A DNA stretch of 64,000 bases, taken from Macrostomum hystrix. Taxonomy: Eukaryota > Animalia > Platyhelminthes. The notes below the pieces were generated by a model, which saw nothing but the letters and a program-made list of their open reading frames with translations, was not told the origin of the DNA and ran no database searches. This document shows, in pieces, positions 23,152 to 41,300 of this stretch (the first letter of the stretch is position 1; each line of letters begins with the position of its first letter). The translations under genes were made by a program, and so were the position numbers. The DNA is taken from NCBI GenBank assembly GCA_950097015.1, contig CATNEN010000003.1, forward strand, positions 7,874,001 through 7,938,000, given 5' to 3'.

Positions 23152-23425
23152 GGTGGTTGTAGCTTTGCGGTTAGAGCGTCTGACTCATGACTTGAAGGTC
23201 GGGGGTTCGATGCCCGACTCCACTGAAAAAATCTGTGTCGTTTAGCCAGACACTTAACTCGGCATTGCTTCAGTTCACCCAGCTGTTAAATGGGTACCAG
23301 CATCAGCTGGGGTAACTGAGGGGGTGTGGCGTCCCCCCAGTCCATGGACTGAACAGCCGTACACGCAGCATTCAGATGCGCCGTTCAAATAGCTGCGGCT
23401 GTGCTGTCGGCTGCACATCTGGCTC
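23152..23425 (+). mobile_element. tRNA-derived CORE-type SINE (3' tail missing)
   Basis: A/B-box head (TAGCTTTGCGG, GGTTCGATGCC) and a MIR/CORE-like block TGTGTC...AGACACTTAACTC...CTTCAGTTCACCCAGCTGTTAAATGGG. It aligns along its length with 35596-35905. Confidence 0.85.
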
Positions 23426-26370: not shown

Positions 26371-26585
26371 GATCTGAAGGTTGAGGTCGCTGTTCAGTCC
26401 ATGGGCGCCATACCCACCCACAATTACCCGAGATAATGCTGGTACTAATTTAACTGTTGGGTGAACTGAAGCAATGCAAAGTTAAGAGTCTTGCTAAAGC
26501 TATAAGACATAATTTGTTACAGTAGTGGTGTCAGGAATCGAACCCCCGACCTTTAGGTCGTTGTAACCACAAGGCGACGACCTTC
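26371..26585 (-). mobile_element. tRNA-derived CORE-type SINE, diverged copy
   Basis: The minus strand reads GGTCGGGGGTTCGATTCCTGAC...TTTAGCAAGACTCTTAAC...TTGCTTCAGTTCACCCA...CCATGGACTGAACAGC. Confidence 0.8.
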
Positions 26586-34505: not shown

Positions 34506-35519
34506 CCATTTGCAGCATAAATGCAGATAGGGCTGCAGGTCATCCAGGTATTAGTTAGGGCAAATAATTATTTATTTGAATGCAAGGCCTTGCAAAATCT
34601 TCAGCTACAGAATTTCTGTGCTATAGCTTCCTGTTCCCCCATATTTGCCAGATTTTACCATGCCATGTGAGCACAACTTTTTCAATCTCAGAATGCATGT
34701 GTGGCAAGAATTCAAACAAAAAATAATAGAACAAATGGATGTAGAACATTGCCAACTTTAGTACTTACTTTTATGTGCAACTTATGTTAAAAGTTGAGCA
34801 GTTTTTTAGAGAACTAAAAATAACAATTATGCCCATACCTTTTAACAATGTAATATAAAAATTATCAGAACATTATTGGAAATCATTTTTAGAGCTCCTA
34901 TTGGATTCGCAATCCTCCAATTTATTTTACACTAATCTTTGCCTTAATTTCTTTAGTTTTTTTCAGCTTGTACTTGTATAATCTATTATGTAGGTTCTTC
35001 ACTGCCTGTGAAATAGTCCTTCCTAATCTTTTTTATAAGAAGTGCTTTGCCCACTTGTTATTGTATACCAACTGCCTAGAAACACAAATTCAACAGCACA
35101 GATAAGTTATCAAGCGCTTAGCTAATTGTCAATAACTAGGACAGTTCCTTTTGAGTTTGTTAGAGTTTTTAGGGTTCCATAAAAGTTTTCTATCTATATC
35201 ATATCCAAAATTTTCCTTTGCCTATCCATAACCATTTCTATAATCTGAATAAACATCAAGTAACTTCCCATTAGTTTGTATTAATATATTAAATATTTAT
35301 ATATTCATATTTTCTTATCACTTGCTTCTTTGTATGCATCAGGGGGCCTGTCTACAAAATTTTTCTGTGTGACATAGTTTGCCAAGTAGGACTTGTTTCT
35401 GCCCTGCTTAAATTTGTATTATAATGTCAGCACATTATATGTGCAACAATGTGCACCCATTTTATAGAGAAAAAAATGACTAAGTATTAGAGACATGTGT
35501 CTGTTCATTTTTTGTCTTT

Positions 35520-35560
35520 CAATAAATTGAGTCTTCGCAGTAAGAGACCGTCTTTACGGT
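35520..35560 (-). pseudogene. Retroposed spliced-leader (SL) exon fragment ACCGTAAAGACGGTCTCTTACTGCGAAGACTCAATTTATTG
   Basis: Matches the Macrostomum SL exon as recalled (CCGTAAAGACGGTCTCTTACTGCGAAGACTCAATTTATTGCATG). It lacks the terminal CATG, the donor and the SL intron. Confidence 0.85.
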
Positions 35561-35595
35561 CTCTAAAAAGAGGTCTCTAAAAAGAGTAAAAAAAG

Positions 35596-35905
35596 AGGTT
35601 GTAGCCTAGTGGTTAGAGCGTCAGACTCACGACTTGAAGGTCGGGGGTTCGATTCCCGACTCCACTGGAACAATTTGTGTCCTTTAGCAAGACACTTAAC
35701 TCTGCATTGCTTCAGTTCACCCAGCTGTTAAATGGGTACCAGCATCAGCTGGGATAATTGAAGGTGGGTGTGGCGTCCCCCAGTCCATGGACTGAACAGC
35801 TGTATGCAGCCTTCAGATGCGCTGCGCATTAGCTGCGGCTGTGCTGTCGGCTGCACATCTGACCCGATTAGGGCAGATGTAATCAATTATTTATTATTAT
35901 TATTA
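35596..35905 (+). mobile_element. Full-length tRNA-derived CORE-type SINE with 3' hairpin and (TTA)n tail
   Basis: A box TAGCCTAGTGG, B box GGTTCGATTCC, CORE-like block, and 3' stem-loop ACATCTGACCC-GATTA-GGGCAGATGT followed by the tail. 15-bp TSD TGTCTTTCAATAAAT at 35513-35527 and 35906-35920. Confidence 0.9.
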
Positions 35906-38354
35906 TGTCTTTCAATAAATATTCTTTGTGTGATTATACAGGTTAATCATAGACACACCACCCCACCAAAAGCACACAGCAATATGTCTAGAGCTTGAGT
36001 CCCCAACATCACACTAGGAAATTGAGTTTCCATTGTATAGTATAAATAAGTGCTTTCATTATTAATGAATATAAATGTGAAATGAATGAATGAACTGAAT
36101 ATAAATATAATTATAAATGTGACTATGTAAAATGTTGCAATTAATGTATTTCATAAAAATTATTATTTTTGAATCCATAAAAAAAGATAAATGTTCAATT
36201 TTATGTTGTTTTCTTTAAATGCTTGCTGGCAAAATTCAAGCAGTTTTAATGCCTTAAATGTTAGGATGTATAAATTAAAAAAACAATAAGTAGACCATTG
36301 TACCGAACAATTCTAAAAGCAATGGCCTATTTTTATGTCTTTTTGGCTATCTGTAGTGGAAAATTATTACTTACTATGAGTAATAACAAATTATAATTAT
36401 TGTTTACTAACCAAAAATTCTATGATTAGCTATCTGGCACTCTTTGTTACTAAACTGTCCTAACCTTGTTACTGAATCAACAATTTTATAACTTATAACT
36501 AAATTGACCACTTACCCTTTTACTTCTACTGAAATAAACTACATATGTATCTATATATTTAATCCTATGTACATAAACCATGGTAGCTACATTAATAGCA
36601 TTTCAACATTAGGGTGTGAATAAAATAAATGTACTATACATTTTTTCCACCACAATACCATGCCAGCCCTATAATAGAGGACCTAGCTATAATCCATATT
36701 TAATATTTTATCCCAAAAAATTCTACTTAATGTAGTTTTGGGAAAGCATTCACACAAATCAAAATCATGAGATCTAATGTTCGAGTGGCACATTTTTTAT
36801 TGAATTGCTACTTTTGATGCATAAGTTTTACTTTTTATGTCAAATGCAGTTGAGTGTATGTGGCCTAGAGTTGGACAACAAGTTAGAAAAGGCTTTTAAA
36901 ATGCTTGACTTTTAACCTAAAATAAAAAAGTTCTTTATCATTACCTTGCACTTTGATGGCTGCAATTGATCAGAAGTGTAGTGAAAAATATCACTAATAC
37001 CATTGTTAATGGGTTTGTCATTTTTTCAAGGGTTAAAGTAAAGTCTTGTGTCTTCTGTTTTCTTTTAGTTTTCCAAAAAAAGACAAAAAATATTTCGAAT
37101 ATGTTATTTCCTTAATAAATCTGAGTATGCTTTTTGTTGCATGTTTTTTAATCTGTTTTTTCTTTCAAAAAATAGTTTCAGCAAAAGCAATTTGTATTTC
37201 AATCTGCAAGAAAATGTTCGTTTAAATTTTGTTTGTTTAATCGCGTATAATGACACATTTTCCAAAAAAAACTAGTTCCCATCTATAAATAGTGCTATTT
37301 AGAAATTCGTAGAGGAAACACTTTCGTCTAAGCAGAGGTTACTACTGCTAGTAGAGTAGCGCGGGTATTAAGGTTTATTAAAATATTCATATATTATATA
37401 CTTTATACTATGTGCTACTGCCAAAGCAAAAAATTATCTAATATCAAGTTCCTTACCTTTGTTTTCCTTAAAAAACTGTCCTTCTCCATGCTTGTCATAG
37501 TGAACGTTTTTCTTTTCTTTAATTCACAACAATCGTGTCTAAAAAATAACAGCATAATATTTTAACCTACTAATAATTCGTTTCCATGCCGTTGTGAACT
37601 ACTTTGCTGCTGGTGAAGTGGGCGGATTGATGGCATTGAATCACTTTTCTATAGATCCGACCAGTGTAGAGACAAACACACTAGGAGGAAACCTGTTTGT
37701 CTGAATTAGGCTAAAGTTATTTTTAGTTAAGAGAAGATTAACTTCGTGTAGGATTTACTAGGAAGATAGAGAAAATGAAGAAAACATTAAATTTTTCGTT
37801 TTCCGCCATAGAGTGGTACTGCCGCGGTTATTCCGCGGACAACCCAATGTCCGCGATTTGCGATAGAGTGTTAGCGTCAGTTTGCGACTGACAGTTTGCG
37901 ATAGTGTACATTCCATTTTTGTTTCATTGTTGATTTTTTTAAATGGCGAACAATGAGCTAGAGAAGAGTTAAGAGAAGACCTATGTAGCTATATGTATTT
38001 TTGTACATAGCTTTTTGTGGCAGTGTTTTAGAGCAACGTTCTTATAATCCCATATTTTGTTGCTGCGTGAATGAGGAAAAGAGAAAAAAATCCTTTTGCG
38101 TACATTTTGTAGCTCTACTAGTTCCATTGTACGCTGTACATGTTATAAAATATTTGGTAAAAATGTGATAATCATGATCATTATAAATCATGAACTGTTC
38201 TTTTGATTGTGCACCATTTTTTTCTAGACATCACCTTTAACTTAGTTAAATCGTCAATTAAAAATCAAGTTTTGATTTAATTAATACCCTTTGTCGAATT
38301 AATTTCAGCATTGAAAAACTCCGCCGGTGAATCTTGCGTAGTTAATGATAAACT

Positions 38355-41300
38355 ATGGCTGAGCTGCAACTCAAAGCTGAATTACAAGCCATACTAGATA
38401 ATAAGCCTTACAAAATTACTAAAGAATTTCTTCAAACGGAAGCATTACAATTTGATAATGCCTTGTTTAGTAAGTGACTGCAGAATGGAATTTTTATATA
38501 GATACTAGATACACTAGGATAGATAGAAATTTGAGTTTTTACCCCAGCTGTAGCTGCTACCCATTGTACAGCTGTTTACAGCTTGACAGAAACTGTCCCG
38601 TCAATTTATTTCAGGCCTCAGTCACGACAAACCAGTACTTGGCCGCAGCAAGGCTGTTATTGTCTCCGGCATTGCATTCTCAGCCAATCGCCATGTTGTT
38701 ATGATTCAAGAGGCTAAACAGTCTGCTAGAGGACAATGGTACCTGCCTGCTGGACGATTAGAAATTAACGAGTCTCTGGAGGTAAGTCGTTAGCAACAGC
38801 CTTTCCCTGAATGCCAAACCGACCCAAACCGATTTCTCATTTCGCAGGCAGCCGTTAGGCGGGAATTTCTCGAAGAGTCCGGTCTCACATTTGAGCCCAA
38901 ACGAGTCGTCAGCATCGAGTGTCGCGACTGCTCCTGGTTGAGGGTGAATTTTCTCGGTGAAATTGTCGGCGGAAAGCTGAAAGTTAGTAGAATGTTATTA
39001 TAGTAATATAATACCCGTTTTGACTAAAATTATTACATTTTTAGTTCTCACACTGATTACATTAATCACATTCGTAATTTGCAGGATTACGAAGATAAGG
39101 AATCTATGTGCGCCAAATGGATCCCTGTTAGCGATGTTGTCGGGTTAGTCATTATACTCTTGCTTTTTTTCAATCCCTCGTGCTGATTTCTGCTTCTAAA
39201 ATAACCGTTCTTTTTATAAAATATTCATTTCAGAAAGAAAATTAATCTTCGGTACGTACGTTTTCTGCTAGGAATTTTTTGTTGTGCTTTTTTTACTGAA
39301 TACTTTCTTCCTGCAAGATTCCGCAGACCCCCAGTCTTCTTCCCCAGACCCTGAGTCTTGTTCTCCAGACCCTGAGTCTTGTTCTCCAGACCCTGAGTCT
39401 TGTTCTCCAGACCCTGAGTCTTGTTCTCCAGACCCTGAGTCTTCTTCCCCAGACCCTGAGTCTTGTTCTCCAGACCCTGAGTCTTGTTGTCCAGACCCTG
39501 AGTCTTGTTCTCCAGACCCTGAGTCTTGTTCTCCAGACCCTGAGTCTTGTTCTCCAGACCCTGAGTCTTGTTCTCCAGACCCTGAGTCTTCTTCCCCAGA
39601 CCCTGAGTCTTGTTCTCCAGACCCTGAGTCTTGTTGTCCAGACCCTGAGTCTTGTTCTCCAGACCCTGAGTCTTGTTCTCCAGACCCTGAGTCTTCTTCC
39701 CCAGACCCTGAGTCTTGTTCTCCAGACCCTGAGTCTTGTTGTCCAGACCCTGAGTCTTCTTCCCCAGACCCTGAGTCTTGTTCTCCAGACCCTGAGTCTT
39801 GTTGTCCAGACCCTGAGTCTTGTTCTCCAGACCCTGAGTCTTGTTGTCCAGACCCTGAGTCTTGTTCTCCAGACCCTGAGTCTTGTTGTCCAGACCCTGA
39901 GTCTTGTTCTCTAGACCCTGAGTCTTGTTCTCCAGACCCTGAGTCTTGTTCCCCAGACCCTGAGTCTTGTTCTCCAGACCCTGAGTCTTGTTCTCCAGAC
40001 CCTGAGTCTTGTTCTCCAGACCCTGAGTCTTCTTCCCCAGACCCTGAGTCTTCTTCCCCAGACCCTGAGTCTTGTTCTCCAGACCCTGAGTCTTGTTGTC
40101 CAGACCCTGAGTCTTGTTCTCCAGACCCTGAGTCTTGTTCTCCAGACACTGAGTCTTGTTCTCCAGACCCTGAGTCTTCTTCCCCAGACCCTGAGTCTTG
40201 TTCTCCAGACCCTGAGTCTTCTTCCCCAGACCCTGAGTCTTGTTCTCCAGACACCGAGTCTTGTTCTCCAGACCCTGAGTCTTGTTGTCCAGACCCTGAG
40301 TCTTCTTCCCCAGACCCCGAGTCTTGTTCTCCAGACACTGAGTCTTGTTCTCCAGACCCTGAGTCTTGTTCTCCAGACCCTGAGTCCTCTTCCCCAGACC
40401 CTGAGTCTTGTTCTCCAGACCCTGAGTCTTCTTCCCCAGACCCTGAGTCTTGTTCTCCAGACCCTGAGTCATCTTACCCAGACCCTGAGTCTTGTTCTCC
40501 AGACCCTGAGTCTTGTTCTCCAGACCCTGAGTCTTCTTCCCCAGACCCTGAGTCTTGTTCTCCAGACCCTGAGTCTTGTTGTCCAGACCCTGAGTCTTGT
40601 TCTCCAGACCCTGAGTCTTGTTCTCCAGACCCTGAGTCTTGTTCTCCAGACCCTGAGTCTTGTTCTCCAGACCCTGAGTCTTCTTCCCCAGACCCTGAGC
40701 CTTCTTCCCCAGACCCTGAGTCTTGTTCTCCAGACCCTGAGTCTTGTTCTCCAGACCCTGAGTATTCTTCCCCAGACCCTGAGTCTTGTTCTCCAGACCC
40801 TGAGTCATCTTACCCAGACCCTGAGTCTTGTTCTCCAGACCCTGAGTCTTCTTCCCCAGACCCCGAGTCTTGTTCTCCAGACCCTGAGTCTTGTTCTCCA
40901 GACCCTGAGTCTTCTTCCCCAGACCCTGAGTCTTGTTCTCCAGACCCTGAGTCTTCTTCCCCAGACCCCGAGTCTTGTTCTCCAGACACTGAGTCTTCTT
41001 CCCCAGACCCTGAGTCTTGTTCTCCAGACCCTGAGTCTTCTTCTCCAGACCCTGAGTCTTGTTCTCCAGACCATGAGTCCTGTTCTCCAGACCCTGAGTC
41101 CTGTTCCCCAGACCCTGAGTCTTGTTCCCCAGACCCTGAGTCTTCTTCCCCAGACCCTGAGTCTTGTTCTCCAGACCCTGAGTCCTGTTCTCCAGACCCT
41201 GAGTCCTGTTCCCCAGACCCTGAGTCTTGTTCCCCAGACCCTGAGTCTTCTTCCCCAGACCCTAAATTTACTAATTTGCTCTCTTAATCTTTCCAGCTCA

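Follow-up and report, generated by a model that had tools for sequence, protein, structure and literature searches.

In a window of 64,000 nucleotides (nt) from the flatworm Macrostomum hystrix (contig CATNEN010000003.1; G000:C3:7874001-7938000 in the searched assembly of 220,453,370 bp and 42 contigs), a tRNA-derived short interspersed element (SINE) is found head to head with an antisense copy of the spliced leader (SL), both parts lying inside a single target-site duplication. The arrangement very likely records one retroposition event with two templates, in which the second target strand, once nicked, served as primer for the reverse transcription of an SL-bearing RNA (heterologous twin priming). 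An initial annotation of the window had already proposed twin priming, which is well supported by our analysis and turned out to be recurrent in this genome: a scan of SL copies for adjacency to SINEs, orientation and microhomology at the duplication, as suggested at that time, returned twelve head-to-head loci, eight of them with a clear duplication.

The outer boundaries of the window insertion are formed by a perfect 15-bp direct repeat (15/15 positions, as seen both by sequence reading and with a repeat finder), and between its two copies follow the antisense SL copy, a 34-nt filler and the full-length SINE with its (ATT)n tail (Table 1). The surroundings of the locus are non-coding. All parts that had been described before (the duplication, an antisense SL reaching the 5′ end of the leader, a stuttered linker and a complete sense SINE with tail) were recovered, except that the SL exon had been drawn one base too far and ends at 35559. 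The stutter consists of the 14-mer GGTCTCTAAAAAGA, placed in tandem by the repeat finder (35558-35571 and 35572-35585), and the SINE starts where copies of its family start. The last eight nucleotides of the left duplication, CAATAAAT, are common to the duplication and the SL antisense and are, as claimed, complementary to SL nt 34-41; the copy stops at nt 41 of 45 and thus indeed lacks the terminal CATG. Since the right duplication is followed by ATTC... and by no SL sequence, the target carried CAATAAAT alone, by chance. The SL hairpin had furthermore been described as lengthened: the extra bases, TCTCT, are present and have no counterpart in the SL gene, whereas the hairpin CCGT-AAAGA-CGG itself is native, the gene reading ...CTTTG before CCGT.

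Short-read contigs from three sequencing runs (X1, X2 and X3) are identical to the assembly over 34900-35549 and span the left duplication as well as 22 nt of the SL copy, so that the left junction is no long-read assembly error, although these runs share one study, may stem from the assembled strain and are therefore not independent of the sample. An assembly or sequencing artefact such as a chimeric long read, in favor of which nothing specific was seen, is a practically negligible explanation, as three runs reproduce this segment without difference and the same anatomy is found at 11 other loci on other contigs.

That the antisense segment is the leader of this very organism, as had been presumed, is borne out by its match to the SL RNA genes of the genome and to the published Macrostomum SL. 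On the minus strand, 35520-35550 is exactly the 31-mer CGGTCTCTTACTGCGAAGACTCAATTTATTG (0 matches in 100 shuffles), which is identical to nt 1-31 of the SL published for M. lignano, a leader of 35 nt (PMC8629364). The SL RNA genes of M. hystrix are arranged in tandem 11.6-kb units on contigs C15, C17 and C42, in which the leader runs into CATG/GTAAG, followed by an intron in which two hairpins and a U-rich site are present; Rfam gave no SL family match for the canonical SL RNA gene. Compared with these genes, the window copy represents nt 2-41 of a 45-nt leader (GCCGTAAAGA...CATG). The genes read ...CTTTGCCGTAAAGACGG..., and GCCGT is also the start of the dispersed copies. In a further run, X4, loose read ends begin directly after 35559 and hence at the same SL 5′ end; the loose ends resemble a template-switch adapter. 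Because gene sequence, dispersed copies, chimeras and the adapter-like read ends of X4 all agree on the 5′ end, the M. hystrix leader would measure 44-45 nt, with its 5′ end at (G)CCGTAAAGA, ten nt farther upstream than in the 35-nt leader published for M. lignano.

Pattern searches of the assembly returned 82 matches to the SL 31-mer and 104 to the first 27 nt, about 18 of which lie in the gene arrays and about 86 of which are dispersed, and 91 SL loci were fetched, oriented and compared with the SINE. At 11 of these 91 loci (window included), this SINE is located within 160 nt of the SL 5′ end in opposite orientation, and begins at its nt 1-4 in ten cases and at nt 37 in one. A twelfth locus (L074) shows the same head-to-head layout with a different (ATT)n-tailed SINE. 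No other SL/SINE arrangement was found within 200 nt at the 91 loci, and a SINE in sense orientation downstream of the SL was seen at none of them. By our own estimate (about 4000 copies in 220 Mb), roughly 0.1 such adjacencies would be expected by chance. Two of these loci, in addition to the window, had first come to light in a pattern search for the junction between antisense SL and SINE head. An exact search with a 14-nt anchor from the SL 5′ end returned only three exact events that were already known. The SINEs of the different events are 88-95% identical to the window copy, suggesting that the insertions are spread over some time.

In all twelve loci, the SL is antisense to the SINE with its 5′ end facing the latter, and the SL copy ends in CCGT or GCCGT, with no extension into the upstream flank of the gene, which points to an RNA origin of the SL piece. 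Eight events (the window, L062, L063, L065, L081, L082, L084 and L087) have one readable duplication around both parts. The 3′ boundaries of the SL copies all fall within SL nt 30-41, differ between the eight events and never reach CATG, and the homology that the left duplication has at its 3′ end with the start of the SL copy amounts to 8, 5, 3, 3, 1, 3, 2 and 3 nt in these events. The fillers between SL 5′ end and SINE comprise 0-34 nt in the eight clean events and about 150 nt in L107, and in L063, L065, L086 and L087 the SL 5′ end meets SINE nt 1-4 with a junction of 0-1 nt. L062 carries the identical TCTCT after ACGG, at the same place as the window copy. As targets, SL boundaries and fillers differ, these are separate events and not descendants of one composite element. 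That SL and SINE were inserted independently, or that they form a composite element and amplify as a unit, might be entertained in view of the wide scatter of SL-like sequences (the approximately 86 dispersed copies), yet both are extremely unlikely given the single duplication around both parts at eight loci and the locus-to-locus variation in which each SL boundary matches the homology of the local target.

Table 1. Parts of the window insertion, target-site duplications of the eight clean events and paired SL-like variants elsewhere in the assembly.
Feature	Position	Strand	Sequence	Length	Remark
Window, left duplication copy	35513..35527	+	TGTCTTTCAATAAAT	15 bp	last 8 nt (35520-35527) also the priming microhomology with SL nt 34-41
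Window, antisense DNA copy of SL nt 2-41	35520..35559	-			up to the SL RNA 5′ end (CCGT...); without terminal CATG, intron or mRNA sequence
Window, extra bases	35560..35564	+	TCTCT		not in SL gene; makes the hairpin AGAGACCG/CGGTCTCT of the complementary DNA longer
Window, filler	35560..35593	+	AAAAAGAGG / AAAAAGAG / AAAAAAAGAGG	34 nt	TCTCT alternating with A-rich copies of the SINE 5′ end
Window, SINE	35594..35905	+		312 bp	tRNA-like head 35595-35664; (ATT)n-type tail about 35887-35905
Window, right duplication copy	35906..35920	+	TGTCTTTCAATAAAT	15 bp	followed by ATTC...
L062 (C11), duplication			TATCTATAAA	10 bp	
L063, duplication			TTGTTTTAAT	10 bp	
L065, duplication			TTTGACTGG	9 bp	
L081, duplication			TAACAATCGA	10 bp	
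L082, duplication			TTAGTRAAAAT	11 bp	one mismatch
L084, duplication			TAAAGCWGAA	10 bp	one mismatch
L087, duplication			TTAGGTAACRATT	13 bp	one mismatch
SL-variant pair	C1:10196351/10203565				
SL-variant pair	C1:15537788/15545189				
SL-variant pair	C8:3485161/3492321				
SL-variant pair	C8:3500825/3507985				
SL-variant pair	C39:15248143/15256515				

The SINE partner belongs to a large and young family: 4060 candidate copies were collected, and the 40 of them that were scored are 94-97% identical and nearly all begin at the same base, AGAGGTTG, as does the window copy. The head of the element scores 31.2 bits with the Rfam tRNA model (gathering score 29), its 5′ end corresponding to position 1 of the model (-1/+1), while ARAGORN called no tRNA in the SINE head. 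The tRNA-like head, high copy number, (ATT)n tails and duplications of 7-14 bp are those of a tRNA-derived SINE; a comparison with the MetaSINE paper did not provide a name for the central domain. Two older copies of the same family are present in the window, at 23155-23421 (+ strand, 90%) and 26372-26561 (- strand, 78%). Among 25 ordinary insertions, about 40% have fillers of 5-40 nt, re-copied 5′ ends or an inverted SINE 5′ end at the 5′ junction, and such fillers and stutters suggest that the enzyme is prone to template jumping. For example, the ordinary copies L015, L008, L025, L026 and L024 display re-copied SINE 5′ ends, an inverted 5′ end (CAACCTCT, in L015) or other fillers of up to 37 nt. 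The duplications of ordinary copies begin with T in 18 of 25 cases, which is suggestive, albeit with no clear T-stretch profile, the signature of RTE-type elements (PMC6007223).

The normal 5′ end of the SINE bears directly on where the SL came from. The initial annotation had left two options: either the SINE transcript was itself SL trans-spliced, so that both complementary DNAs (cDNAs) were made from one molecule in classical cis twin priming, or a separate SL-bearing RNA was captured in trans. In favor of the former, both orientations in one duplication are the classical picture of twin priming, and AG dinucleotides in the SINE 5′ end (AGAG) might serve as acceptor. However, CATG, the 3′ end of the SL, stands beside the SINE in none of the events, nor is there any splice-type or acceptor-side join, and the SINE 5′ end is normal for the family in 10 of the 11 events, coinciding with tRNA position -1/+1 and thus with the expected start of RNA polymerase III (Pol III) transcription. 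In addition, the direct contact of the SL 5′ end with SINE nt 1-4 in the four loci named above indicates that synthesis of the first cDNA terminated at a genuine end of the RNA. Trans-splicing of the SINE transcript itself is consequently very unlikely, whereas capture in trans fits the normal SINE 5′ end, the absent splice join and the direct junctions, all of which place the SL on another molecule.

A different route to the same products would be filler-DNA capture, in which a ready SL cDNA or DNA fragment is pasted in by microhomology-mediated end joining, with no target priming on the SL at all. The microhomology of 1-8 nt at the left boundary would be expected from end joining as well, and unexplained fillers are common at the 5′ junctions of this SINE family, but random capture should yield both orientations instead of the one in which the SL 5′ end points toward the SINE in 12/12 loci. 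Capture of this kind is furthermore rendered improbable by the SL piece always extending exactly to the RNA 5′ end and by L065, where the homology needs one G:U pair, which is permitted on an RNA template and therefore hints at one.

According to heterologous twin priming, the endonuclease/reverse transcriptase encoded by a long interspersed element (LINE; a putative partner) would nick the bottom strand, and a normal Pol III SINE RNA would be copied, starting in its (AUU)n tail and ending at its 5′ terminus. The top strand would be nicked 15 bp away in the window (9-15 bp across events), leaving a 3′ end ...CAATAAAT that could anneal to AUUUAUUG (nt 34-41), in an A/U-rich stretch of the SL on a separate SL-bearing RNA, and its extension to the SL 5′ end would generate the inverted SL copy. 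The CGG at the 3′ end of the SL cDNA then probably folds back on its own CCG and adds TCTCT (snap-back synthesis), and both cDNA ends would finally be joined after several template jumps, giving rise to the stuttered filler. The layout agrees with this scheme, in that the SINE is in sense orientation with its tail at the 3′ duplication and the SL is inverted at the 5′ duplication, as does the microhomology of 8 nt (CAATAAAT) in the window and of 1-5 nt in the seven other clean events. Moreover, the SL conforms to what characterizes heterologous chimeras, namely a small RNA that is antisense, copied to its own 5′ end and 3′-truncated (here at nt 30-41). Beyond the observed anatomy, recurrence, microhomologies, exact SL 5′ end and intact SINE 5′ end, we infer the order of events, the snap-back step and which of the SL-bearing RNAs was the template.

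As to the nature of this template, we lean weakly toward free SL RNA, which is somewhat likelier than the 5′ end of a trans-spliced mRNA, since in none of the 12 events does the priming site lie within the intron or the body of an mRNA and since priming at nt 30-41 coincides with what is predicted to be the apical portion of stem-loop I. As folded in silico (z = -3.05), the SL RNA has nt 30-35 in the apical loop of this stem-loop and nt 36-41 in a weak distal helix. It is tempting to go further and regard SL RNA as the preferred second template, its exposed AAUUUAUUG loop mimicking the (AUU)n tail and the SL small nuclear ribonucleoprotein or the free SL exon intermediate being repeatedly taken as a pseudo-tail, but we consider this doubtful. 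If true, the trans-splicing apparatus would be tied specifically to retroposition at the molecular level, and this link could also seed SL-like sequences genome-wide. A search for antisense U1 and U6 5′ ends adjoining the SINE head gave no exact match, with anchors that may not fit this species, and is thus at best a weak hint that the SL is preferred over U1/U6 as captured RNA.

Several points weigh against heterologous twin priming or restrict what can be deduced from it. Three of the twelve loci (L086, L109 and L074) are without a readable duplication, and L107, which we grade as probable, has extra bases between duplication and SL. Our search required SL nt 2-28, and events primed farther upstream in the SL would therefore be missed, so that copies of less than 27 nt are under-ascertained. 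In the window, the right flank beyond 35925 is without contig coverage in four runs, which leaves the right junction and a potential empty allele uncovered, and a 393-bp skip is not among the listed joints. The filler is not derivable step by step, and free SL RNA is indistinguishable, as a template, from the 5′ portion of a trans-spliced mRNA because priming took place upstream of the splice junction. Finally, the partner LINE was not found: BLAST of the SINE against the fetched loci and the window gave SINE copies only, and a scan for RVT_1 listed 150 reverse-transcriptase sites; the one LINE 3′ end that was read (L124) was rejected as partner, as it ends in (TAA)7 instead of (ATT)n.

SL sequences are also associated with other elements in this genome. 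Two 11.6-kb units of the SL arrays (L042, G000:C17:36204-39234, and L056, G000:C42:41670-44700) contain an insertion of about 7.3 kb, the 3′ end of which is located 11-12 bp upstream of the SL start and which has 950-amino-acid RVT_1 open frames 1.7 kb upstream on the same strand; it has the appearance of a LINE with the SL gene as its landing site. Pairs of an SL-like variant that carries two substitutions (ACGGCGAAGG) are found with a spacing of 7.2-8.4 kb, each pair around an RVT_1 open frame of about 1500-1630 amino acids (Table 1), and represent a long terminal repeat (LTR) retrotransposon, both LTRs of which contain such an SL-like sequence (about 16 copies of the variant, which were sampled rather than all inspected). 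Many dispersed sense SL copies belong to repeat families with conserved upstream sequence (L033, L053, L059, L102, L104; L034, L052, L060, L064, L073, L076; L066, L071, L077 and others). In one of these families, a TATA-like TAAATATATTT precedes the SL start by about 35 nt, and ATTGG (a reverse CCAAT box) is found about 60-160 nt upstream in L053, L093, L096, L113, L085, L103 and L121. These families resemble promoter-bearing units with the leader at their start, rather than plain retrocopies. In another SL copy (L050, G000:C31:1408981-1412011), which is cut after ATTTATTGCA, an AGAGA extension precedes CCGT and fold-back-like repeats (GACCGTAAATCTCTGACCG) lie past the 5′ end, so that it may be another snap-back product. 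The window itself additionally contains a long minisatellite (39225-41287; units of about 21-24 bp, open in several frames) that is unrelated to the SL-SINE insertion.

While no long-standing question is opened by these insertions, they suggest that twin priming on foreign RNA, hitherto inferred for LINE-1 of mammals, takes place with non-L1 machinery and a SINE in a flatworm as well, and spliced-leader RNA can be added to the RNAs that are captured. The events can furthermore be read as natural records of the SL RNA 5′ end, in support of a leader of 44-45 nt versus the 35 nt published for M. lignano, and as a sign that SL-bearing RNA comes within reach of nicked chromatin. In addition, they provide a dozen datable junctions for the study of second-strand priming, snap-back synthesis and template jumping.

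The earlier suggestion that a link of this kind between trans-splicing and retroposition is undescribed goes too far, as twin priming has previously been invoked for antisense chimeras of small RNAs with LINE-1. In mammals, 5S rRNA, tRNA halves and U5 were found copied from their 5′ ends, antisense and inside duplications (10.1101/2025.02.02.635956). As in those chimeras, a short, abundant non-coding RNA is copied here from an internal point to its 5′ end and is located antisense at the 5′ junction of the retroelement, within one duplication and with the small-RNA 5′ end toward the retroelement, and breakpoints recur at small-RNA loops in both systems. In contrast, the donor in M. hystrix is the spliced-leader RNA, which is absent from mammals, the partner is a flatworm tRNA-derived SINE with an (ATT)n tail and putative non-L1 LINE machinery, and snap-back and stutter fillers are prominent. 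The classical 5′ inversions of L1 by twin priming (Ostertag and Kazazian 2001) likewise show a duplication, an inverted 5′ segment, a sense 3′ segment with tail and the second duplication, with the 3′ end of the second strand priming at microhomology, but both segments are there derived from one L1 RNA, whereas the inverted segment here originates from a different RNA. In U6/LINE-1 chimeras, which are sense and arise by template switching or RNA ligation (PMC6789731), and in the tripartite and likewise sense chimeras of Magnaporthe (PMC2104539), a LINE-mediated insertion brings along a small nuclear RNA on its 5′ side, within one duplication as well; unlike the same orientation of the U6 type, that of the SL is opposite in 12/12 cases and sense in none. 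Dinoflagellate retrogenes share with our insertions that an SL has become fixed in genomic DNA via reverse transcription, but their relict SL is a complete sense copy that meets the mRNA body at the trans-splice site (PMC6050394, PMC5585692), while the SL described here is antisense, 4 nt short at its 3′ end and without a splice junction to the SINE. In the literature searched, 'twin priming' and 'spliced leader' appeared together in no one paper, and broader searches retrieved no SL/SINE chimera. Summed up, the mechanism is known from other systems, and it is the spliced leader as donor and a flatworm SINE as partner that appear to be new.

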